A stretch of 64,000 nt of DNA. It comes from Octopus bimaculoides. Its lineage: Eukaryota. A model generated the notes under the pieces. It had not been told where the DNA came from and did not search any database. It saw only the letters and a program-made list of their open reading frames with translations. The stretch covers positions 38,363,298-38,427,297 of the forward strand of contig NC_068989.1 in assembly GCF_001194135.2 (NCBI RefSeq), in the 5' to 3' direction. The translations under genes and the position numbers were made by a program. This document shows, one piece after another, positions 1-53,300 of the stretch (the first letter of the stretch is position 1; each line of letters begins with the position of its first letter).

Positions 1-2028
1 ATATAAACACTAGTGGTATCTATAATTTATTGGCATATTTACATTTATAGTATCTAAACTTGTAGGAAAGTAATTGTCAGAATTTGATTGGTTAAAAGAT
101 TGTATGGGGAAGGGTAGAATAGTGACATGGAAGTAGTAATGTTAAACTAATTATTAACAAAGGATTTAAGATTTAATCAAAGTTAACTTTTGATGTTACA
201 AAAACAAAAGAAAAAGAACGAAAGAGTATTACTTATCTAAATTTAATCAGATCATTGTTAAAGAGGTGCTAATTTATATCTGTTACAGCTTGATTGTGAA
301 TTTGTTTACTTTGTCCAGTATTTTAGTGTCAACTCTAACATTAAATCTAAGAAATCTATTAGCATTATTGATTGGTAGTTGTTGTTAAACTATTATGTAT
401 TTAAGACCATAATTAGCTTGACTAATGTTTCAAATCTATAATTAACCTATTGAAAAAGGATAGCAGCTTGAGTTATCTAAGATTAGTTACTTACCTTTTC
501 ATCAGACAGAGATAGCTGTGTATAGCTATAAAAACATTTCATTTATCCATTGATTAAAAACTAAACTGTTTCAGAAATATACACCAACACACACACAAAT
601 ATTTGCTGATACATATTTGCAACCATTTTTCAGTGCTACAATAATGGTGAGGTGATGTTTAATAGATTGAGGTTTAGTGTAAAGACTTCTCAAGAGAGAT
701 TGTTTCCTTTTGGACATGTTCCCTGACACAATTTAATCAGCTGTTTATTTATATTTTAGACAGTCTGAATCTATTAGAGCGAATACATCTAAAGATTCAA
801 TTCATTTGTGCAAGCCCTTATTCTTGAAAATATGGTCTTCTTAGACTTTCAACTCCTCATAGAGTGTAGGTTGTGAAGACATACCTTCCCAATTTTTCTG
901 TCCAGGCAATCCTTTCTAACAACTTCCAATCCTTTCCATTTCATTCATGGTCCTATTTCTCAGGAAATTATGGTACTTATGAACCATGTGACAGCATGAG
1001 TGTTATGCTTTTTGTGTATACATTTCTGTTTATGTTCTGAAGCCAAAACAAATTCTATCATCTCTAGCAGAGCCCTGACCAGAAAATAGTTTCTTTTATT
1101 TGAGATGCCTTCTGTTGCTATTAGCAAGAAATATTTTTATGCAGTAAGGCTAGTAAACCTATAAATAACACTGGAGTGAAAGACAAGGTCTGAGCTTAGA
1201 GACCTTTAAATGTATCAGAATCACAGATAAACACTTGGATGGCAATCTTTGTATATTCTGGATGGAATCCTCGCCTACATAGAAATCTTTCTTTCTCTGT
1301 GCATGTGTGTTTACACACACACACACAAATACGTATGCACACACGTCTGAAATTCTCAGTTATATTCTATATTTATGTTTAATGTGTATAGTGTGCATAA
1401 GTTCACAATACATTAGTTCGTCCTCTGCTCCCATCTCTGTTGTCACACTTGCTCTTTCCTTCTACATCACCACCCTCGTAAGACCTAACCACTACCACTT
1501 CTACAGAAGGACTCTTTCTGTTGCACATCCATGGACGTTATGTATATGCTTAAATGTACTTTTGCAATTCAATGTATATTGGGCTGTCAACTGACTCTCA
1601 ACTGTCTGATAGGTTTGCAGAGTAATTCAGGGACAGTGAGCCATCTGCTACTTGACATTTTTGCTCCACCAACCACTTCACACAAAACTTTTTCTTTGGT
1701 TATCAAAGCTGAATGTTCTATTTCCCTCTTTCACAAGGACCAGGAGCTTGTCTTGTTTCTACAAACTTTTACACTAACATACAACTATCAAAACACTCAT
1801 CCCCACATCTTTTCTTTACTTCATCTCAAAAGGTACCATTTTCTCCTGGTTTTCAGCCCTTCTGTCTTCCTCCTCTGTTTTCTATTCTTTCTGAAAAATA
1901 CAATGTCCTAAACATAAAAGACATTCAATTCTTCCAAACATTAAACTAATACCCTTTCATCAAACATTGTTTTTTCCTTGGGATTTTTTCTATGACTTTT
2001 ACTTGTTTATGACTTTTCATTTATATTA

Positions 2029-3400: not shown

Positions 3401-4379
3401 GTTAGTTATTTCAGAATATAATGCAAATAACCAGTAATCTTCCGGAAATTTATGACAAATAAAGTCTGATGCATGATCATGAGAAGCTATTGATTAAGGG
3501 ATTCACAAGTGACACTGCAACTTACATCAACTTATAATAAACATAATGCAATTTTCACCATCACTCAGTTAATTTCATCCCCACTATTTAATCATACTCT
3601 CAAGTGTATATATGTGTGTGTGTGTGTTATTGGATGAAATTGATTGGAATGATGAGTTACAATGAAGCAAAAATGAAATATAAATGTAAGTTGATCATTA
3701 TGGTAATTGATTCAAAACAAAACAACACCATCAACACGTGAGAAAAAAAAGTACAAGAATGCAAAAAAAAAAAACAAAAAAAAAAACAAAAAAAACAGAG
3801 TTGATGAATTTATTAACTTTAAAAATAGTAAGAATAGAATACTATGATAGATGAATTGAGTTAGATACAAAGCATATGAAATGAATGAAATAATACAAAG
3901 TTTGAGACACTTAAATAGACACCAACAGTGTGAGAAGGAGAATTTTTCCTGAATGGTAGCTGCATATTGTAATTTTAGTATAAATGATTTAGTAGACCTT
4001 CATAGTGCAAAGAATGCAGAGATTATTGTTCCCATGTATGCTTTATATAAAGTATATTCCCTCTTACTTGGAAGAATATTGAATTCTGTTTTAATGAAGT
4101 GTGCTGAATTCTCAGTTTATGCCTGTCATAGTTTTTAAAAGAATGCATGTAATAATAAAATCTAGATTTAAAAGGATAAGCTTTAGAATTATTGATAGTA
4201 GTAACTAAACATTGGTACATTATGCCTTTAACCAAATAGATTCTAGAGAACAGTTTTTGATATCTGTACAGTTTCAGAGACTGGTGCAATATCATTTACT
4301 AGTTTTATTAGATCTAAGCTAAGATGTGTTAGAAAAGGCTAAATTATGGTCAAAGTTTGATACCATTTTTATTAAAGAT

Positions 4380-7420: not shown

Positions 7421-7607
7421 TTGAGACTCACACATTCTACAGCAGTATAATATTGGTATAAATGAAGACTTGTCATAAATCGATTCCAGTTTATTTTTGT
7501 TGTACTTTTAGAATTAACAACATATATATATTGTAGCTCAATGTGTGAAAATAATTGCTACATTTCATGTTGCAGATGGAATAATTTTTTCATGAAGTAT
7601 TTTAAAT

Positions 7608-7850
7608 TATCATCATCATCATCATCAATATTTTTATACTATTTTTTTCCTATAATGGTAAGGGTTGGATGAAGTGATTGTTCAGCTAGAGAATCCTCCC
7701 TACCCTATATTGATTCCTAGATTAGTTAGCTGCCATATCTCACACTTATCCTCCATTTTCAGCATGGTTTCTGTAGCTGGATGCCTTTCTTACCACCGAT
7801 TAATTTAGAACATGCTCTGGGTGCATTTTATCAGGTCACTGATTCTAGAG
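7608..7850 (-). mobile_element. RTE-derived 3'-UTR remnant
   Basis: (CAT)n tail plus AGCTGGATGCCTTTCTTACCACC, related to segments at 20.9, 51.3 and 57.1 kb and to the RTE 3' UTR at 50.3 kb. Confidence 0.5.
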
Positions 7851-8184
7851 AGATTGTCCAGCATCAGACAGTAATTTCATATGGTAAAACATCCCCGATA
7901 CAATGATGAATATAGTCAAGCTGATAAGGGAGGCAAATTTTCTCCAAGTCACATCTATATGTGTCCTTCCTTTTGTTAAAGCATGATGCATCAATGTTTT
8001 TTGTTTTTTTTTTAAATAAAACGTTATATTAAGAAAGATGGGACGGGAGAAAATGGAACACATATGATAATAGATATACTTGATCAGAGTGGACCAGTTA
8101 GAAGCTAAATAAGAGCAACAACAAAAAGAACATAGTAATGACTTAATAATTACAATAACATGACTATAAAGGCATACAAGATAT

Positions 8185-9072
8185 AGATGCAATATGGACA
8201 CATGTTTATCTGAGTTTTTGTTTCCCTCATACTCCACTAGTTCTGGAAGACCGTTGTTCCAAATTGCTCCCCAGACCATCACAGAATAGATATCGTATTT
8301 AATTGTTGGCTGCAATTTTTTCACATCAAATTCTTGATCACAGTGTCTCCAGACCCACACTCAACCACTGGCAGAAAACACAGCAAATCTGGACCCATCA
8401 GAGAATATGACAGTGTCCCAAAATGCTAGTGGCCTCTCCAACATCTCACTAATCCAATCTTTTCTCTGCTTGATATTAGCTGGTCAAAGAAGTGGCTTCC
8501 TTCTTGCTGCTCTGCTATAGTAGTCAAGTTTGTGGAGATACCTGACAACTATTTTGGGACTGACAACAACTTGTTCTACTATGTCAGAGGCTTTGCAATG
8601 AAGATTATCCTCCACACTTCTCTTAACAAAGTGAAAGGTCTTGTCAGAAGGCTCTGGTTGACCTGGGTGAGGTGTTGCAGACACCTTCCTATCTCTGGTG
8701 AATTGCACAGTCACTCTATTAACTGCAGAAAGTGGGATCCCAAGGTTTTTTGTGATTTTACACTGACTATGTCCTCTTTCAAATTGACTCACAAAACAGC
8801 CTCTTTGAAATTCAGACAGTTCCAAGGCTTCTTGTGTATGTGGCATGATTAAACAGTCACATATAGAACCTGAAACATAAAAATGTCAATTAATAAAAAA
8901 TATAAACCTTTTCAAGTTAAAATAAACATAAAACGATGTTTTATGGGGTGTCTATTTCTGTCATGCCTGTGTGATTCTAAGTTCAATTTAAACTATGAGG
9001 CATCTTGGGCAAGTGCCTTCTGCCACACACATTGGAATAACTTATTTCAAAATTGTGCAATGTGCATGTATG
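8185..9072 (-). mobile_element. Tc1-family DNA transposon relic, 3'-truncated
   Basis: ORF 8484-8846 gives the Tc1 paired HTH domain (LSEFQRG...LGIPLSAVNRV...AARRKPLL). Downstream are VIFSDGSRF (first catalytic Asp) and VMVWGAIW. Stops and frameshifts present; no second D or E. Left boundary approximate. Confidence 0.85.
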
Positions 9073-10400: not shown

Positions 10401-11629
10401 GATCTTGGTTTGCTTGCTTGGGTAGACTGTGACAAGCATTTGTAAGATTATGACAAATGACATTGTGATGATCAATAGTTTAGGACCTAAAACTTTCTGT
10501 TACTTTGTATTGAATATAATGAATAAACAGTGGTCACTGAAGTTTATAAGTATCTGTAATTTCTAATTTTTATCAGAAGAAGCATGTAGATGTTCAGATT
10601 AATGGCCTGTAAAATACTTCCAATAAATTATTGGAGGCAACTATAGTTGAGCTAGCAACCTAAAGACAGTCTGGCTAGAGGACATTGCTGTTTAAATGGC
10701 TAAGATGGAAGAATAAGTGAAGAGATCCTTAATTATTCAGACATCTTAGCCAGTTTATTAAACGAGGTAAATTTGATGCTTTAAATAATTTTCTCCAAAA
10801 TTTAGATTACATATTTGTATATACATGCATGTGCAAACACAGACCTAAAAACATTCATTGGAAATTTAAGGTAGGTAGAGAGAGAAACACAAGTTTGAGA
10901 TGGTCAAATCCAGTACCAACAAAAATAATTACTGGACTTGATATGACCAAGTTAAACATCTTGAAAACAGTGATCCCAACATGGCCACAGTTTACAGAAT
11001 GAAACAAGTGAATACTTAATATAAACTCACAGAAAACACATGGAAATACATTACTGCACAAAAACGTAAACTGTAACATAGACACTTGCATTCAGGAGAA
11101 AATGCTTATACACATATATGTTACTCTTTGAAAGACTAGCTACTCTGCTCTTTGATAGATTCCATGAAGTACTAAGTTCAGATGGGAATGGGAAACGAGC
11201 CCAGAGTTGGAGTTTGCACCTTGCATCAATGAGATTGGGTCTCAACTGTAATGATTAAGCTACAGAGTTCCTGCCACTACACTTACTCATAATAGCGATT
11301 GTCTGCCATGTAATTCACAATGTAATTACCTCACAAGCTCTAGAGGCATGGTGTCTGTTCAATAGAGCTGTTTCTCTATCTGACACTAATTGTTATAAAA
11401 TCTCAGCAATTCATAACACTGCCTGAATCATCAGTTTCACTTGCTGAGAACAGTTTACACTTTGACTTTGTTTCTGGTGAGGAGAGAGAAAATTCAACAC
11501 CCAGCTGTTTGTAAAATTACTTGTTTAAGCAGTATGTAACAGTCCATTTTCAAAAACTGTCCAACTCATGCTAGTACTGAAAATTTGAAATAAAGTAACT
11601 ATATATAGGTTCAAAAAAAAGGAAAAAAA

Positions 11630-12246: not shown

Positions 12247-12812
12247 ATATGCGCAGTATGTGTGCGTGCATGTGTTAATGTTTGTTGTGTGTGTATGTGT
12301 CTTGTGTGTGCCCATGTATATGTGTGTGTGCGTATGATGTGTCTGCATGTATGTATACTTGGGTGTGTGTGTGAGTGCGTGTTGTGTATGTGTAGGAGTT
12401 ATGTGGGGTTCATTTGCATGTGTGTGTATGTGGGTTCGTTTGTGTATGTATGTGTATGTGTATATTGTGTATGTTTTTGTGCGTGCGTGTGTGTTTGTAT
12501 GTGTGTGCATGTTGTGTATATGTGCGTTCCTGTGTACGTGCGTTTGCTTCTGTACGTGCGTGCATGTGCGTGTGTTGTTTATGCCCATGTGTGTGTGATT
12601 GTATGCGTGTCTGTGTGAGTGTGTTGTGTTTGTGAGAGGTGTGTGTGCGAGTATGTGTGCGTATGCGTGTGTATGTGTGTGCGTGTGTTTATGTGCGTAT
12701 GTATATGTGTGCGTGTGTATGTGTATGTGGGTGTGTGCGTGTGTGTGTGTATGTGTCTGGATGTGCGTACGCCTGTGTGTGGGGGATAGTGAGTGTTAGG
12801 TACGTGTGCGTC
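11886..12812. repeat. Compound (TG)n/(TGCG)n/(TATG)n microsatellite, about 930 bp
   Basis: Direct inspection; source of the many C/V/Y and H/T-rich spurious ORFs. Confidence 0.95.
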
Positions 12813-12819
12813 GGAGCAA

Positions 12820-14220
12820 GGGTAATACATCTTTTGGTAGCAACCATAATAAACAATTTTTTAGAAACAGGTGTGATAAAGACAAGAATAAAATAAATAG
12901 GTACACGAAACGAAATAGTACTAATTTTGGATAAATAAACTGAATGGTTCACGACCCAGAATAAGAGAGGTAATTTGGTTCCCCTCCCCCCTCTCTTTCT
13001 CTCTTAGGGTAAGAAATTTACCCAGGATGTTCTTTAGGATCCTGGAGAATAACTTCCCTAAAGACCATAAATACTCTAGTATCTGCAACAGATCTTCAAT
13101 TAAGCTTTCCTATTCTGGAATGCCTAATCTAGCATCGATTATTGTCTCTCTTAATAGAAGCAAATTAAATAAGCTAAAACAATTTGAATATCCTTGCAAT
13201 GGAAACCTCGGTTCTGATAAAACCAGTTGTAGGTCACACAATGATAGTGGGACGTGCTCTCCATTCCTTCTGATTGTGCCGAAACCCGGGAATGGGAGGA
13301 ATGGAATTGTAGATAAGGATAGACTAGCAAGTGCTGTTACTGGCGCTGAAAATAAATTTAGGGGTAGCCAAAGTAAATTATGTAATTGTAGAGACCCTCT
13401 ATTATGTCCTTTTGGCGGGCTCTGTCTGTGTATAAACGTCGTTTATAAATGTACTGTCAGGGACGAGAACAAACTAGATAAGTTTTATATAGGAAGCACG
13501 AAGGATTTTAAGGTTAGATATAGAGCGCATATGAGTTCGTTTTCAATTGAAAAATACTGTAGCTCTATCACACTCGCCTCTTATTTGCATGACCTCAAGA
13601 AGAAGAATATAAAGTACTCTCTTGAATGGTCTATTATATCGAGAGCCCCCTACTTTAAGGCAAATATTAGTAAATTTTCCTTATGTATTAGGGAATCCCT
13701 TGTGATACTCAGGTCTTTTGGACTAAAAACCTTAGATAAGTTCACCGAAGTAATCCCCTTCTGCAACCATAAGTTTTCCTCCACCTTCTTGAAACTGTAT
13801 AGAAATAAAAATAAATTTAAAAACAATAGATAATAACAAGTGTAATAGTTTGCGTTAGGGTGATTTGAAACCTCGAAGATTGGTTTTGATACTGCAGCCT
13901 GTTTGACTATTCTAAAATAGCACTTTTTTTTTTTAATCTTTCCATTATTTGCATGGGCTTGTCTAAGGCTGGTCCATATTTCTTATTCTTTTATTTATTA
14001 TTTCTCCTTACGTTATTTTTCTTACGTTATATCTTCCTATTCCTTATGCTTGACGGATTATGTTGTATATCTTATATATGTTCATTGAGGGGTGTGATAG
14101 GTTGAGTCGTAGACCCAGCGTTTTCTATAACTAATATTTTACTCTTGTCTCAAATTTTCTGAGCACTTCTCCTTGCAGCCCTGTATAAAATCTATTGGTT
14201 TCAGAATAAGAAACCATTAA
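12820..14220 (+). mobile_element. 5'-truncated Penelope-like element (linker + GIY-YIG endonuclease + 3' tail)
   Basis: Starts directly after the (TG)n tract and ends at a (TA)n tract; encodes the PLE C-terminal domain (see next feature). Confidence 0.85.
12925..13833 (+). pseudogene. PLE ORF C-terminus: GIY-YIG endonuclease domain
   Basis: The frame is open from 12925 (upstream of the ATG at 13027): VIWFPSP...NNFPKDHKYSSICNRSSIKLSYSGMPN...CNCRDPLLCPFGGLCL..NVVYKC...FYIGST..FKVRY..H...LEWSII...LCIRE. This is the diagnostic PLE linker plus GIY-YIG. A frameshift near 12920 separates an N-rich upstream part; no RT present. Confidence 0.85.
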
Positions 14221-14246
14221 TATTATATATATATATATATATATAT

Positions 14247-14412
14247 TATTGTGTCTGGGGAGAGTCATTCTGTTTTAATGCCTTATTAATTAACGCATTC
14301 TCCGGTTCGATTTCCACTCATTTACTTATATATTTTTTCTAAAATTTTCATTGCTTCTTGCAACCACTTCAGTAGTCACTGACTCTGTCCGTTATCGGAA
14401 CTGCATTCTTTT
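14247..14412 (-). mobile_element. Short repeat ending in (TA)n, with a hammerhead-like motif (putative PLE terminus)
   Basis: Minus strand CTA-CTGAAGT-G-GTTGC-AAGAA-GCAAT-GAAA-ATTT-TAG at 14375-14339; tail-to-tail with the PLE across (TA)n at 14221-14246. Confidence 0.5.
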
Positions 14413-14440
14413 TGTTTGTTTGTTTGTTTGTGCGCATGTG

Positions 14441-14659
14441 TACTCTCTTTACTCTTTACTCTTTTACTTGTTTCAGTCATTTGACTGCAGCCATGCTGGA
14501 GCACTGCCTTTAGTCGACCAAATCGACCCCAAGACTAATTCTTTGGAAGCCTAGTACTTATTCTGTCGGTCTCTTTTGCTGAACCGCTAAACTACGGGGA
14601 CGTAAACACACCAGCATTGCTTGTCAAGCGATGTTGGGGGAACAAACACAGACACACAA

Positions 14660-21813: not shown

Positions 21814-23095
21814 TTTGTTGGGAAAGGGTGTGTGGAATGCACAACGCTTCTAGAATTGAGTTTCGCTGATGTGGGCAGGTCTACTCAAGAACTTCATATC
21901 ACTAGACATCTCAGTCCATTGCCATTTCCTCTTGTGGGTAAAACTGAGCAGACAGAAATTGTCTTGAAGCCCATCAGGTGGGTTGTACTTGTAATTCAGT
22001 ATGACAATCTTGGTCATATGATACTGTGTGAGAATTACTTTAAGGTTACACTTCTTTCTCATTCAATGTACCTAATAATTCAGATGATCAAACAATTGGA
22101 TCCTCACTGTTGAATGATGGAAATTCATCCATCTTACCCTCTGTTATCTAAATTAATAATATAGAAAATATTGCATTTCCATATCATAGAAAATATTTCC
22201 TTCTCCTTGTGAATAGTGAAGAGTTAAAAATAAAATACATGCAAGCACACAATTAGCTTTTGCAGTATGGTTTTTGTATGTGCACATATATGCAAATATT
22301 AGGGTATGTGTATGTTATCTGATCAAAATCTATAACTGTGAAATGCTTAATTTTCACATTATATATTAGTTTCATTTTATTTTTTTGCATATAAATTTAT
22401 TTAAGATTTCTTTAGTTTTCATCCTTGATTCTCTCTCTTTATGGTATTTATTCCAGAATTCAACTTATTCCTTAAAGAAATAGAAAACACCTTCTCCCCC
22501 AAACCCCCGTCTCCCCCCCCCACACACACATACACACACACACCACTTATAATTTGTCATACATCAGTGTGTACTTGTATCTAAATCTGTACATATTTCT
22601 ATCCATGTATTCATATTTTCACATGGTTTGTGAACATAAATTGTTTTCACTTGTATCAATCTTAAATATGTATTTTTACCAAAACTTCAACAATTTCAAC
22701 GTGATTTTTTCAATCAAATAATTTACTTTAATGTATAAAGTGAGAAATAAATAGAATAGGCCAGAAAATTACAAATTTTGGAGAAAAGAATTTCCCAGTT
22801 GATTTATTCCTGCATCTATCTTTTAATGCATTTTACCTTTCTTATTTAGTTTCCATTTCATCATCATCATCATCATCGTCGTCAGTGTTACGTGTGTATG
22901 AGTATGTAACTATGTGTGTGTAACTATGTGTGTGTGTGCATTGTTTGCCTCGTAATATCCAAGCTATTATTATTGAGATGCCAATAGCATTTTATTCATT
23001 TAAAACCTATTTAATATATCTTAATGCTTACAAAATTATCAAAGACATCATGTATACACACATATACACACGTATTTATATAAATTCATATATGC

Positions 23096-25811: not shown

Positions 25812-25924
25812 GATATCCTTGTGTATATATATATGTGCATGCATGTACACAGAGTATACAAATATATGTGAACTACAGCAAGTCATGAAGGTAAGGTGAC
25901 CAAACAAAATGTTATGCACCAAAT

Positions 25925-25996
25925 AATATAGAAAATATTGCATTTTCATATCGTAAAAAATATTTCCTTCTTGTGAAGAGTTAAAAAAACAAATAC
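25925..25996 (+). repeat. 72-bp dispersed duplicate of 22158-22238, flanked by a 16-bp direct repeat
   Basis: ATGTTATGCACCAAAT at 25909-25924 and 25997-26012; the insert aligns to the 22.16-22.24 kb sequence with two short gaps. Confidence 0.8.
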
Positions 25997-27429: not shown

Positions 27430-27670
27430 TGTAAAGCAAAACTTTACAGTCATTCTGATAAACATGTATCCATGCTTGTATGAATCATATGAAATATCTT
27501 GAGGCAGATTTTCTGCCATCAGATGCACTTCCAGTTGACAACTCTCACTTGTTTTGGAGCAAGATAATGTTTTCCCATGACTGAATATGTTTTCTTCTAT
27601 GATTGGAAATGAATGATACACTTGCCTGATGGTGACACTCATTTACATCCATCATTCTATGACAAGACAA
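27430..27670 (-). mobile_element. SINE body with RTE-type tail
   Basis: Reverse complement matches the plus-strand copies at 30900-31130 and 33510-33770. Confidence 0.65.
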
Positions 27671-27699
27671 AAAAAAAGCACAAGCACATACATACATAC

Positions 27700-27975
27700 T
27701 TCGCATCGAAGGTTGTCGATTGTCGTACGTTGAGGACGGGTAAATACCCAGAAACTCGAGTCCGTACGTATCGCAGATCAAGATGGGAAGGATGACTTCC
27801 CTTTGCAAATACAGACAGGACACAGATGTGTGTCGATAGCCAGCTGGAGGAGATGTTCTCCTGGGGCTAAAAGCAACAGTAACATCCACCCTTAGGGGTC
27901 AGCCACATTTAAGTGGCAAATATACTTCACCTTGTGCAGTTACTGTTAATACCTCATTCAGAGATTTAACATTAT
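27700..27975 (+). mobile_element. ORF-less, CpG-rich, hairpin-rich element carrying a hammerhead ribozyme (retrozyme or PLE-terminus-like)
   Basis: High CpG density against a depleted background; hammerhead plus at least four further hairpins; runs into the assembly gap. Confidence 0.6.
27717..27773 (+). ncRNA. Type I hammerhead ribozyme (predicted cleavage after GUC, C27762)
   Basis: Helix I CGTACG 27724-29/27763-68 plus CGAT/ATCG extension; core TTGAGGA 27730-36; helix II GGGT-AAAT-ACCC 27738-49; GAAA 27751-54; palindromic helix III ACTCGAGT 27754-61; C17. Deviations from consensus: U3 instead of C3, and a C.A mismatch closing helix II. Confidence 0.7.
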
Positions 27976-28041
27976 NNNNNNNNNNNNNNNNNNNNNNNNN
28001 NNNNNNNNNNNNNNNNNNNNNNNNNNNNNNNNNNNNNNNNN
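27976..28041. other. Assembly gap (66 N)
   Basis: Run of N. Confidence 1.
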
Positions 28042-28104
28042 AAGAATGTACATTAAGTACAGGACATTGCCAGTGAGTGAAAAATGTGTAACACACACAC
28101 ACTC

Positions 28105-28235
28105 GATGAGCTTCTTTCAGTTTCCATCTGCCAAATTCATTTCACAAAGCTTTGGTTAATCCACAGCTGTAGAAATTTGGTAGAACCGGGAAACAGGTGG
28201 TCAAAGGCAAGCTTCTTCACCACACAGATAAGCTT
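28105..28235 (-). mobile_element. SINE head fragment
   Basis: GCTTCTTTCAGTTTCCATCT...CACAAAGCTTTGGT...GCAAGCTTCTTCACCACACAG. Confidence 0.75.
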
Positions 28236-30714: not shown

Positions 30715-31130
30715 AAGTACAGGTGTAGTCACGTGGTTAACAGGCTTACCTCCCAACCATGTGATCTTGAATTCAATCCTACTGCATGGCTCCTGGTGCA
30801 TATGTCTTCTACACTGAGATAACCAAAGCCTTGTGGATGGATGGATTTGGTAGACAAATATTGAAAAAAGCCCGTATATGTGTGTGTGTGTGTGAGTGTA
30901 CCTTTGTCTATTTATTACATGATGGATGTAAATAAGCTTCACCATCATACAAGTAAGGTTGTTCATTTCCAGTCTTCTGTGAAAAGAATGTCTAACTCTT
31001 ACATGAAAATGGGTGGGGGTTGGCAGAAGAAAGGGCATCTACTTGTAGAAAATTTGATGCAAATCATTTCATTGGACCCATATGAACATGAAAAAGTAGA
31101 TGTTGAATGATGATGGTGATAATGATGACA
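30715..31130 (+). mobile_element. Full SINE: tRNA/CORE head plus RTE-type tail
   Basis: A/B-box-like head, CCAAAGCCTTGTG, (GT)n, then GACCCATATGAACATGAAAAAGTAGATGTTGAATGATGATG tail. Confidence 0.75.
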
Positions 31131-33138: not shown

Positions 33139-33770
33139 TAGTAATATGACCTACATTTATGGCAGCTAATTCCTCCCTTTGACCAGTGGGGTTAAGAAGT
33201 TAGTCTGAGCTATTTTTAGAACGATACTACCATGTGGTTGAATAAACAAATACATAAAAAACAAATTTTTTTCAGTTGGAATTATTTTCCATTTCAAAGA
33301 AATCAAATGCCCTGATGAAGCCCTTGATGGATTATAGCATCATGATGCACTAAATGATGCAGAGGATGCACTTTGATAGCGGTAGAAATGTTATGTAGGT
33401 GGAAATAGAAGAACATAGATGACTATATAATGAAGAATATTCTCTATTCTTTGTTTTCCTTAAACTGATTCATTACACACACACACACACATATACGTGT
33501 GTGTGAATGAGTGTGCCATTATCTTGACATTATAGGATAGTTGTAAATGAGGCTCACTGTTAATAAAGCAATAGTGTTCATTTCCGGTTTCCTGTGAGAA
33601 AGCCTGTCTGGCCATGGGGAAATGCTACTTGTTTGGGAATAGGGGAGGGTTGGTGACAGGAAGAGCATCTGGTTGTACAAAATCAACCTCAAAAAATTCT
33701 ATCTGACCTATGCAAGCAAGGAAAATGGATGTTAAAATGATGATGATGTTAATGATAATGATGATGATGA
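32370..33770 (+). mobile_element. Cluster of three decayed SINE copies (about 32370-32880, 32945-33135, 33490-33770)
   Basis: Head motifs at 32370 and 32950; RTE-type tails at 32820-32875 and 33700-33770. Confidence 0.6.
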
Positions 33771-51509: not shown

Positions 51510-51587
<78 letters not shown>

Positions 51588-51642
51588 GTCCATCCATCTA
51601 TTAGTCTGCCTATCTGTCTGTCTGTCCATCCATCCATCCATC
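51495..51642. repeat. (TATC)n/(TGTC)n/(ATCC)n compound microsatellite
   Basis: Direct inspection. Confidence 0.95.
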
Positions 51643-51644
51643 CA

Positions 51645-52519
51645 GTTAATTTTTGCTCCTATTACTGTTTCATATTCTTTTAGTGTCTTGCTGACCAGGT
51701 CGATATGCCTGTGGCTTGACACTATGATGGTGACATCGTCCGCATATGCAGACACTTTCCTCCTGCATCCCACCTCTTGCAGGATGCCTCTCAGCATCAC
51801 CAGCTTCTGCAGTAGTGACTCAAGAGTCAAAACATACAAAAGCGATGAGAGAAGGCATCCTTGACGAACTGAACGCGTGATGTTAAATGGTCTGGACAGA
51901 TGACCATTTACACGAACTACTGAGCAGATGCCACTGTATAAGGCAGTGATCCAATTGCAGAAGACGGGACCAAAACCAGCCGCTCTAAGGACAGCCTCCA
52001 AGTAGCGATGGTCTACCCTATTGAACGCTTTTGATTGAACCAAATTGATCAGTGCCCCACCCATGCCAGGCTGCTTAACTGCCCTGTCTATGATGTAGTG
52101 CATCAAATGGAGGTTGTCATGGATACTCCTACCCAGCACAGTGCATGTTTGTGCCTTGTTGACCAGTTTCTCGATGACAAGCGCCGACCTCTCGGCTAAC
52201 ACCTTGGCCAAAATCTTCAAATCTGCGTTGAGCAGAGTGATGGGCCTGAAGTTATCTATGACGTTCCCTTTGTTTGGATCTTTCTTTAGCAGTGCCACTG
52301 CTCCTCGCTTTACAGAGACAGGGATACTCCCATTTTGCTGCCAGTTGCAGTAGACAACTGACAAGATGCCTCCAAACAAGTCTGGCATATGACAATAAAG
52401 TTCGTAGGGCAGACCATCCAAGGCTAGCGACTTGTCTCCTGCGCAACCTGCCATTGCATCCCATACATCCACGGCTGTGATGTGTCCTTCACAATACTCT
52501 GCCTCTCTTGCCGAAAGTC
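51645..52519 (-). pseudogene. L1/Tx1-clade LINE reverse transcriptase internal fragment, frame intact
   Basis: EAEYCEGHIT...KS.ALDGLPYELY...LLKK...NFRPITLLNADLKILAKVLA...GRSIHDN...QSKAFNRVDH...SVRQGCLLS.LLY...SAYADDVT...GAKIN; no stop in about 290 codons. The first catalytic Asp (LD..KAFD) reads LV..KAFN. Confidence 0.92.
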
Positions 52520-52677: not shown

Positions 52678-53300
52678 TATATAATATGCATATATTATGT
52701 ATATATATGTGTGTGTGTGTGTCTGTATACATCTGCACAAATGTATATATATAGATGTATATATATATGTATGTATATGTATAGANNNNNNNNNNNNNNN
52801 NNNNNNNNNNNNNNNNNNNNNNNNNNNNNNNNNNNNNNNNNNNNNNNNNNNNNNNNNNNNNNNNNNNNNNNNNNNNNNNNNNNNNNNNNNNNNNNNNNNN
52901 NNNNNNNNNNNNNNNNNNNNNNNNNNNNNNNNNNNNNNNNNNNNNNNNNNNNNNNNNNNNNNNNNNNNNNNNNNNNNNNNNNNNNNNNNNNNNNNNNNNN
53001 NNNNNNNNNNNNNNNNNNNNNNNNNNNNNNNNNNNNNNNNNNNNNNNNNNNNNNNNNNNNNNNNNNNNNNNNNNNNNNNNNNNNNNNNNNNNNNNNNNNN
53101 NNNNNNNNNNNNNNNNNNNNNNNNNNNNNNNNNNNNNNNNNNNNNNNNNNNNNNNNNNNNNNNNNNNNNNNNNNNNNNNNNNNNNNNNNNNNNNNNNNNN
53201 NNNNNNNNNNNNNNNNNNNNNNNNNNNNNNNNNNNNNNNNNNNNNNNNNNNNNNNNNNNNNNNNNNNNNNNNNNNNNNNNNNNNNNNNNNNNNNNNNNNN

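Follow-up and report, generated by a model that had tools for sequence, protein, structure and literature searches.

Hammerhead ribozymes carried by mobile elements are abundant and well described in animals. In the canonical animal hammerhead, helix I spans 6 bp and helix II 4 bp, and helix III is short and palindromic (Cervera & de la Pena 2014; PMC4209133). Several animal genomes each contain thousands to more than a hundred thousand hammerheads carried by Penelope-like elements (PLEs) and retrozymes (PMC4209133, PMC7229834); 235 matches to the Rfam Hammerhead_1 model were reported in the draft genome of the giant squid (PMC6962438). PLE hammerheads are mostly found dispersed and singly, which has been attributed to truncation of the elements, and in their minimal form display a conserved extra nucleotide after A9, low or dimer-dependent activity and covariation of positions 3 and 8 (PMC4209133). 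Retrozyme units are 170-400 nt long (PMC7229834). Natural hammerheads whose helix II lacks a Watson-Crick pair at its base are also on record: the axolotl HHR_Amex2, present in ~60,000 copies, has a U.U at this place and cleaves mainly as a dimer (PMC7229834), and U10.1.U11.1 hammerheads have been reported elsewhere (PMC3088659). Given such abundance, one more solitary copy is unsurprising in itself, and the sole unusual point of the locus described here is a recurring mismatch, C10.1.A11.1.

We analyzed a 64-kb stretch of DNA (hereafter, the window), a eukaryotic sequence of 35% GC with abundant microsatellites and repeats and two assembly gaps. At positions 27717-27773 of the forward strand, the window contains a candidate hammerhead that, judging from the resemblance of the motif, is somewhat more probably than not an animal type I hammerhead by descent, derived from a PLE or a retrozyme, now solitary and probably slow or dead. 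Read as RNA, the segment 27717-27773 consists, in order, of CGAU, UGU and CGUACG; UUGAGGA; C, GGGU, AAAU, ACCC and A; GAA; ACUCGAGU; C, followed by the predicted cleavage site; and CGUACG, U and AUCG. The features of the locus are as follows.

27685-27699, no strand assigned: (ACAT)n microsatellite abutting the CpG-rich block (sequence)
27699-27716, plus strand: 5' flank, forming with 27774-27791 an outward extension of helix I; the CpG-rich block begins here (111-nt fold)
27717-27729, plus strand: helix I 5' strand, CGAU + UGU + CGUACG (sequence, pair probabilities)
27717-20 / 27770-73, plus strand: distal helix I, CGAT / ATCG (sequence)
27721-23 vs 27769, plus strand: helix I internal loop, TGT vs T (sequence)
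27724-29 / 27763-68, plus strand: proximal helix I, CGTACG / CGTACG, 6 bp (sequence)
27730-27736, plus strand: core 5' strand TTGAGGA, positions 3-9 (sequence; consensus core from PMC3088659)
27737 and 27750, plus strand: C27737.A27750 mismatch at 10.1/11.1, the base of helix II (sequence)
27738-41, 27742-45 and 27746-49, plus strand: helix II hairpin, GGGT, loop AAAT and ACCC (sequence)
27751-27753, plus strand: core 3' strand, G12 A13 A14 (sequence; GAAA = 27751-54)
27754-27761, plus strand: helix III, the perfect 8-nt palindrome ACTCGAGT, from A15.1 to U16.1 (sequence)
27760-62, plus strand: cleavage triplet GTC, GUC in RNA (sequence)
27762, plus strand: C17, with predicted cleavage at 27762/27763 (hammerhead numbering applied to the sequence)
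27763-27773, plus strand: helix I 3' strand, CGUACG, loop U and AUCG (sequence, pairing)
27774-27791, plus strand: 3' flank, partner of 27699-27716 (folding)

Direct reading of the sequence confirmed all the elements that a first-pass annotation of this DNA had placed at 27717-27773 (+). The type I anatomy that it had recognized was borne out as well and is that of metazoan hammerheads, with a 6-bp helix I carrying an internal loop, a helix II of four positions and a short palindromic helix III (PMC4209133), and the two caveats it had attached, a U3.G8 wobble and a C.A closing helix II, are both correct. Base-pair probabilities range from 0.77 to 0.98 over all 10 pairs of helix I and from 0.87 to 1.0 in the helix II hairpin (27737-27750). 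In the canonical 4-position register, helix II reads GGG/CCC with the loop UAAAUA; A27750 sits between the last C of helix II and G12, and a core-adjacent G10.1-C11.1 pair is absent. G12 A13 A14, the A15.1-U16.1 pair (A27754/U27761) and H17 (C27762) are all as the hammerhead class requires, and the pairs 1.1-2.1 (C27763-G27729) and 15.1-16.1 (A-U) are both Watson-Crick. Within a monomer, helix III could form at most an A-U and a C-G pair around a UCGA loop, and between two copies the palindrome would provide 8 intermolecular base pairs. The two strands of proximal helix I are the same self-complementary hexamer, CGTACG. A 6-bp helix I with its loop, a helix II capped by a docking loop and a palindromic helix III of 1-2 bp are thus all present, as in canonical metazoan type I hammerheads, and docking may occur.

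The description of the candidate as near-canonical was nevertheless too generous, given that U3 and C10.1.A11.1 are each disqualifying under published screening rules (PMC3088659). In the core UUGAGGA, position 3 is a U, whereas the other five fixed positions are correct and position 7 is free, so that the invariant core departs at one site; similarly, C27737.A27750 occupies the place of a Watson-Crick 10.1-11.1 pair, the three helices being otherwise present. Perreault et al. (2011) rejected matches with a core mutation, C3 being among the positions listed, or with a 10.1-11.1 mispair, and termed such a reject a 'cryptic mutant hammerhead' (PMC3088659). The sole natural covariation reported for positions 3 and 8 is U3-A8, not U3.G8 (PMC4209133, PMC3088659). 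The Rfam search that had been proposed as a check was negative: with the hammerhead models concerned (Hammerhead_1, _3, _II, HH9 and HH10), no hammerhead was recovered at the gathering threshold in the whole window or at E<=10 in slices of 301 nt and 71 nt. The slices yielded only weak snoRNA/lncRNA noise at E 3-10, and neither a microRNA nor any other Rfam family. This is weak evidence against a hammerhead because the consensus-core motifs of the metagenomic loci L013, L005 and L023 (see below) were also missed at E<=10.

Thermodynamic folding, which does not include tertiary contacts, assigns -10.6 kcal/mol to the hammerhead fold vs -17.9 kcal/mol to the lowest-energy fold. In the latter, the core is sequestered, its positions 3-7 (UUGAG) being paired with CUCGA from helix III, and the result is a simple long hairpin with GGGU-AAAU-ACCC at its tip. 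U3 and G7 each strengthen this competing fold, and the pair probability of the monomer helix III is ~0 in the thermodynamic ensemble. Because U3.G8 is only a wobble, 10.1-11.1 is a C.A, the competing fold is 7 kcal/mol more stable and no partner copy is assembled in the window, the candidate is probably slow or inactive and unlikely to be an efficient ribozyme.

The chance expectation was estimated with an RNAmotif-like descriptor that allowed Y at position 3 and tolerated a single extra or mismatched nucleotide flanking helix II on either side, with minima of 5, 3 and 2 bp for helices I, II and III, respectively. The descriptor had been relaxed after the fact to admit the candidate, which a strict scan, without the helix II mismatch, skipped because of the C.A. 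On both strands of the window, the candidate was the sole match to the relaxed descriptor, and the same was true when it was relaxed further. Among 2,800 dinucleotide-preserving shuffles of the window, we found 17 matches (0.006 per window), one of which equalled the candidate in helix lengths (>=6, >=4 and >=3 bp for helices I, II and III, respectively; ~0.0004 per window). Extrapolated to a genome of a few Gb, an assumed size, this rate yields roughly 10-20 equally good chance sites, so that the per-window significance alone is not decisive.

Features outside the descriptor add to this picture. Loop 2, UAAAUA, is identical in 5 of 6 bases, and in register, to the CAAAUA of the Schistosoma-derived N79 hammerhead, which has GUCC-CAAAUA-GGAC at the helix II/loop 2 position (PMC12550524). 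The flanks lengthen helix I beyond chance: the 111-nt fold that includes them has an energy of -35.9 kcal/mol (z -2.7), and an equally good fold was obtained with only 6-12 of 500 shuffled flanks and with 5 of 500 random genomic ones. As for CpG dinucleotides, the earlier remark that they are retained in the candidate proved stronger than stated. There are 10 CpGs in 27701-27780, the highest count among all 80-nt segments, and the observed/expected ratio is 2.0 in the block vs 0.21 in the whole window. The edges are sharp, with no CpG in the 300 nt upstream and one in the 195 nt downstream; the CpGs of the 5' part are at 27702, 27707 and 27717, and the block ends at ~27775. This density and these edges indicate that the block is clearly not background sequence. 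Since the loop 2, flank and CpG features were picked after the sequence had been seen, their probabilities were not multiplied; together, they make a pure chance look-alike a minority reading.

The first-pass annotation had further suggested that the palindromic helix III allows the motif to act as a dimer. The palindrome itself is real, but the mechanism requires a second copy, and none was detected in the 64-kb window by exact, 3-mismatch or low-stringency blastn searches or with relaxed descriptors; thus, a tandem dimer cannot form from the assembled sequence. Tandem repeats, including the head-to-tail units of ~170-400 bp that characterize retrozymes, were likewise absent from the candidate locus, with a small doubt due to a 66-N assembly gap (27976-28041) located ~200 nt downstream, the only place able to hide a second copy. 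The sequence between the motif and this gap (27775-27975) is unique within the window, and that beyond it (28042 onward) shows no similarity to 27680-27975 and runs into an unrelated repeat. A SINE-like repeat is present in three diverged copies with ~70-80% identity, at 27480-27680 (-), 30876-31100 (+) and 33491-33700 (+); the first of these, upstream of the block, ends before it, and the alignment places the motif outside the repeat. The (ACAT)n run between them is likely an insertion boundary. PLEs have an insertion bias toward microsatellites (PMC8557442), which, by analogy, may have operated at this locus. Within several kb of the candidate, we found neither a reverse-transcriptase nor a GIY-YIG ORF, nor the pseudo-LTR arrangement of PLEs; the nearest Penelope-like ORF remnant is 14 kb away. 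However, most published motifs are solitary remnants (PMC4209133), and the lack of an adjacent ORF therefore does not exclude Penelope-like descent.

Several other elements were identified in the window. The remnant mentioned above is a 268-aa ORF at 13027-13833 (+) that contains a Cys-rich linker and matches GIY-YIG weakly (Pfam E 0.004); its two distant homologues, P0001 and P0002 (28% and 26% identity, respectively), are of the HTH_animal type. We interpret the ORF as the C-terminal portion of a PLE truncated at its 5' end. It directly follows a long CA/GT-rich microsatellite (~11.5-12.9 kb), and no hammerhead was found downstream of it (13834-14640) on reading or in a descriptor scan. A 296-aa ORF at 51582-52472 (-) encodes a clear reverse-transcriptase domain (RVT_1, E 3e-24) and is LINE-like; the second assembly gap, of 515 N (52786-53300), lies ~300 nt beyond it. 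Another short interspersed repeat, which we take to resemble a very abundant octopus SINE, has copies at 14480-14620 and 28100-28230. The 171-aa ORF at 7845-8360 (-), starting VMVWGAIW, had no Pfam match at E<=0.01; the motif is presumably akin to that of Tc1/mariner transposases. Finally, a 50-nt direct repeat (22155-22204 and 25922-25971; 94% identity, 3.8 kb apart) may mark the ends of an element. ARAGORN detected no tRNA or tRNA-like head in the window, and exact-protein look-ups with two window ORFs found nothing on record.

To search for relatives of the candidate, we scanned metagenomes with a pattern derived from it, TGANGANGGGTNNNNACCCNGAAAC, and obtained 24 loci. Most of these are GC-rich, ORF-dense prokaryotic contigs in which the match is evidently due to chance; L009/L011, L015/L022 and the other GC-rich, ORF-dense matches were judged to be chance or non-hammerhead. 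In L011 (~7570-7650, -) and L009 (~2110-2190, -), which are ORF-dense, prokaryote- or virus-like contigs, the match has the form CUGAUGA-A-GGGUAUUCACCC-A-GAAAC. In L011, it is the internal loop within an inverted repeat of 17 perfectly matched bp, which leaves no room for helix I; the core of this element is hammerhead-like, but the architecture is not. Two patterns had no matches among viral contigs, and bacterial and archaeal genomes gave 2 matches, of which the one inspected, L025, is not a hammerhead. The motif is spanned by a spurious ORF, with which a protein-word search returned no candidate paralogue, and a full-text literature search for GAAACTCGAGT strings was dominated by shRNA loop sequences.

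The closest relative is L013 (ERZ1740055 NODE_19508, motif at 578-620), a eukaryote-like contig with 36% GC and no long ORFs. Its motif reads ACUCU; CUGAUGA; C, GGGU, GAAA, ACCC and A; GAA; ACUCGAGU; A, followed by the cleavage site; and AGAGU. L013 shares with the candidate the C after A9, the GGGU/ACCC helix II, the A before GAAA and the identical CUCGAG helix III, and differs from it in the consensus CUGAUGA core, the loop GAAA, the triplet GUA and another, still complementary 5-bp helix I (ACUCU/AGAGU). The similarity to the window extends over 31 nt at 90% identity and is confined to the motif, the flanks sharing nothing. Because L013 and L005 were fished out with a candidate-derived pattern, their matches in helix II and the core are partly by construction; however, neither the C...A around helix II nor the CUCGAG of L013 was required by the pattern. 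The contig also carries a tRNA at one end (15-87, +; Rfam 42.5 bits) and, on the opposite strand, an 80-aa ORF (109-351, -) containing GLYRDNGL. This ORF is perhaps akin to the reverse transcriptase of the Penelope-like family that includes P0002; neither Pfam nor BLASTP against P0002 supported the likeness.

A second eukaryote-like locus was recovered from three samples (L005, L018 and L023), with the motif CAGCUC; CUGAUGA; U; GGGUGUCAACCCC; GAA; ACAUGU; A, followed by the cleavage site; and GAGCUG. L023 contains three hammerhead motifs, at ~3902-3946 (-), 10936-10975 (+) and 12609-12651 (+), in all of which A9 is followed by an extra U and helix III is palindromic (ACAUGU or ACACGU). Their helix I and helix III sequences differ and still pair. 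Two of the motifs share their orientation and are separated by 1.67 kb, as described for PLEs (PMC4209133), and the third points the other way. An additional motif was reached through a homologue of the GIY-YIG ORF of the window: in L027, a TARA ocean contig, a hammerhead motif at 1306-1368 (+) follows the stop codon of a Penelope-like ORF, of the HTH_animal/GIY-YIG type, at a distance of ~210 nt. Its helix I comprises 10 bp, its helix II, flanked by U/U, 8 bp and its helix III 3-4 bp, and its triplet is GUA. As the L023 and L027 motifs attest, hammerheads with an unpaired or mismatched helix II base are real and associated with retroelements.

Thus, we favor the reading in which the locus represents one dispersed copy, a CpG-rich, self-complementary block of ~75-95 nt (27699-27791) set against the (ACAT)n microsatellite and most likely originating as the end of a recently inserted, severely 5'-truncated retroelement; the presence of a Penelope-like ORF remnant in the same window (13027-13833) was counted in its favor. 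If transcribed, the block would form a helix I of 6 bp, the UGU/U internal loop and further pairing outward, together with a helix II, GGG(U)/(A)CCC, whose UAAAUA loop would be positioned to dock on the helix I loop, and a weak palindrome as helix III. G12 would then activate the 2'-OH of C27762, with cleavage predicted between C27762 and C27763. Cleavage by hammerheads leaves a 2',3'-cyclic phosphate and a 5'-OH. Descent, the mode of insertion and the level of activity are all parts of this scenario that we infer, the first of them from the likeness of the motif to described hammerheads.

The main departures from consensus can be read in other ways. The candidate might be a functional variant in which C10.1.A11.1 and U3.G8 are tolerated, or serve as conditional switches, and the RNA cleaves in vivo; trans-dimers with transcripts of sister copies, protonation to A+.C, or A-to-I editing of A27750 yielding an I-C pair could each provide a route. 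We regard this as unlikely, despite several points that speak for it. The C.A is common to the candidate and to L013, whose core is otherwise consensus, which makes two independent decay events unlikely, and the perfect helices and retention of all CpGs argue against a decayed copy. Furthermore, natural hammerheads with a U.U in the equivalent position are active, and loop 2 and helix I have the geometry that fast cleavage requires. On the other hand, C3 is an invariant core position with U3-A8, rather than U3.G8, as the natural covariation, the competing fold is strongly favored, no partner copy exists in cis, and the editing route presupposes a cephalopod host, which the repeats in the window may suggest. 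The lowest-energy fold, a plain long hairpin, also suits a chance look-alike, namely, an unrelated CpG-rich foldback hairpin, such as an inverted repeat or a microRNA-precursor-like structure, with internal loops resembling the hammerhead core. The self-complementary CGTACG in both helix I strands, the post hoc relaxation of the descriptor, the roughly 10-20 equally good sites expected in a genome of an assumed few Gb and the silence of Rfam all fit such an origin. We consider such an origin distinctly improbable, however: the core, GAAA, A15.1-U16.1 and H17 are all in place, and loop 2 agrees in register with the canonical docking loop at 5 of its 6 bases; in addition, the same C...A and CUCGAG recur at an independent locus, L013, and Rfam matched the locus to no microRNA or other family.

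A further reading turns on the 66-N gap, which could conceal the collapsed remainder of a tandem non-LTR retrozyme array with the candidate as its first unit, in which case the dimer mechanism would apply. The gap lies ~200 nt downstream, that is, within one retrozyme unit (170-400 nt, PMC7229834), and tandem repeats commonly break short-read assemblies, as has been stated for PLEs too (PMC8557442). Nevertheless, the sequence from 28042 is unlike 27680-27975 and enters an unrelated repeat, the CpG-rich block stops at ~27775, and no tandem signal is seen, leaving an array very unlikely.

Compared with these readings of the locus itself, a broader proposal concerns the mismatch: C10.1.A11.1, found in the candidate and in the unrelated contig L013, would mark an unrecognized natural sub-class of hammerheads with a conditional pair closing helix II at its base. 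We give this only the slimmest of chances. Such a pair could arise by protonation, as an A+.C wobble, which would make it dependent on pH. In a cephalopod host, which the repeats may point to, an I-C pair could instead result from A-to-I editing of A27750, an A opposite a C being a favored ADAR context, and, if this were true, the ribozyme would be switched on by RNA editing. Should the consensus of the family carry the C.A or U3, the list of tolerated natural hammerhead variants would be extended, and consensus-strict screens and Rfam models would be missing a sub-family.

Among described systems, Schistosoma Sm-alpha/N79, the newt and axolotl satellites and non-LTR retrozymes share with the candidate the order and spacing of the elements and the GUC triplet. 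As in canonical metazoan type I hammerheads, helix I has 6 bp and an internal loop, helix II has four positions with a 6-nt loop, and helix III is a short palindrome extendable in a dimer; by contrast with the canonical type, the candidate has U3 for C3 and C.A for G10.1-C11.1. It also differs from the satellites and retrozymes in being a single copy in 64 kb, outside any tandem of 170-400 bp, and in being unrecognized by the Rfam models. The minimal hammerheads of PLEs resemble the candidate in the palindromic 15.2-16.2 / loop 3, and C27737 can be read as the PLE-type extra nucleotide between A9 and helix II. However, the minimal hammerheads keep G10.1-C11.1, have a helix II of 6-8 bp and a helix I of 4-5 bp and lack loop-loop docking elements, whereas helices I and II of the candidate are of canonical size, A27750 stands before G12, and neither a pseudo-LTR nor a reverse-transcriptase/endonuclease ORF is adjacent to it. 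HHR_Amex2 and the U10.1.U11.1 hammerheads are similar to the candidate in that a non-Watson-Crick helix II base is embedded in an otherwise canonical type I structure, in their case with weak activity in the monomer and better activity in the dimer; unlike in these hammerheads, which have a U.U, the mismatch in the candidate is a C.A and is combined with U3.
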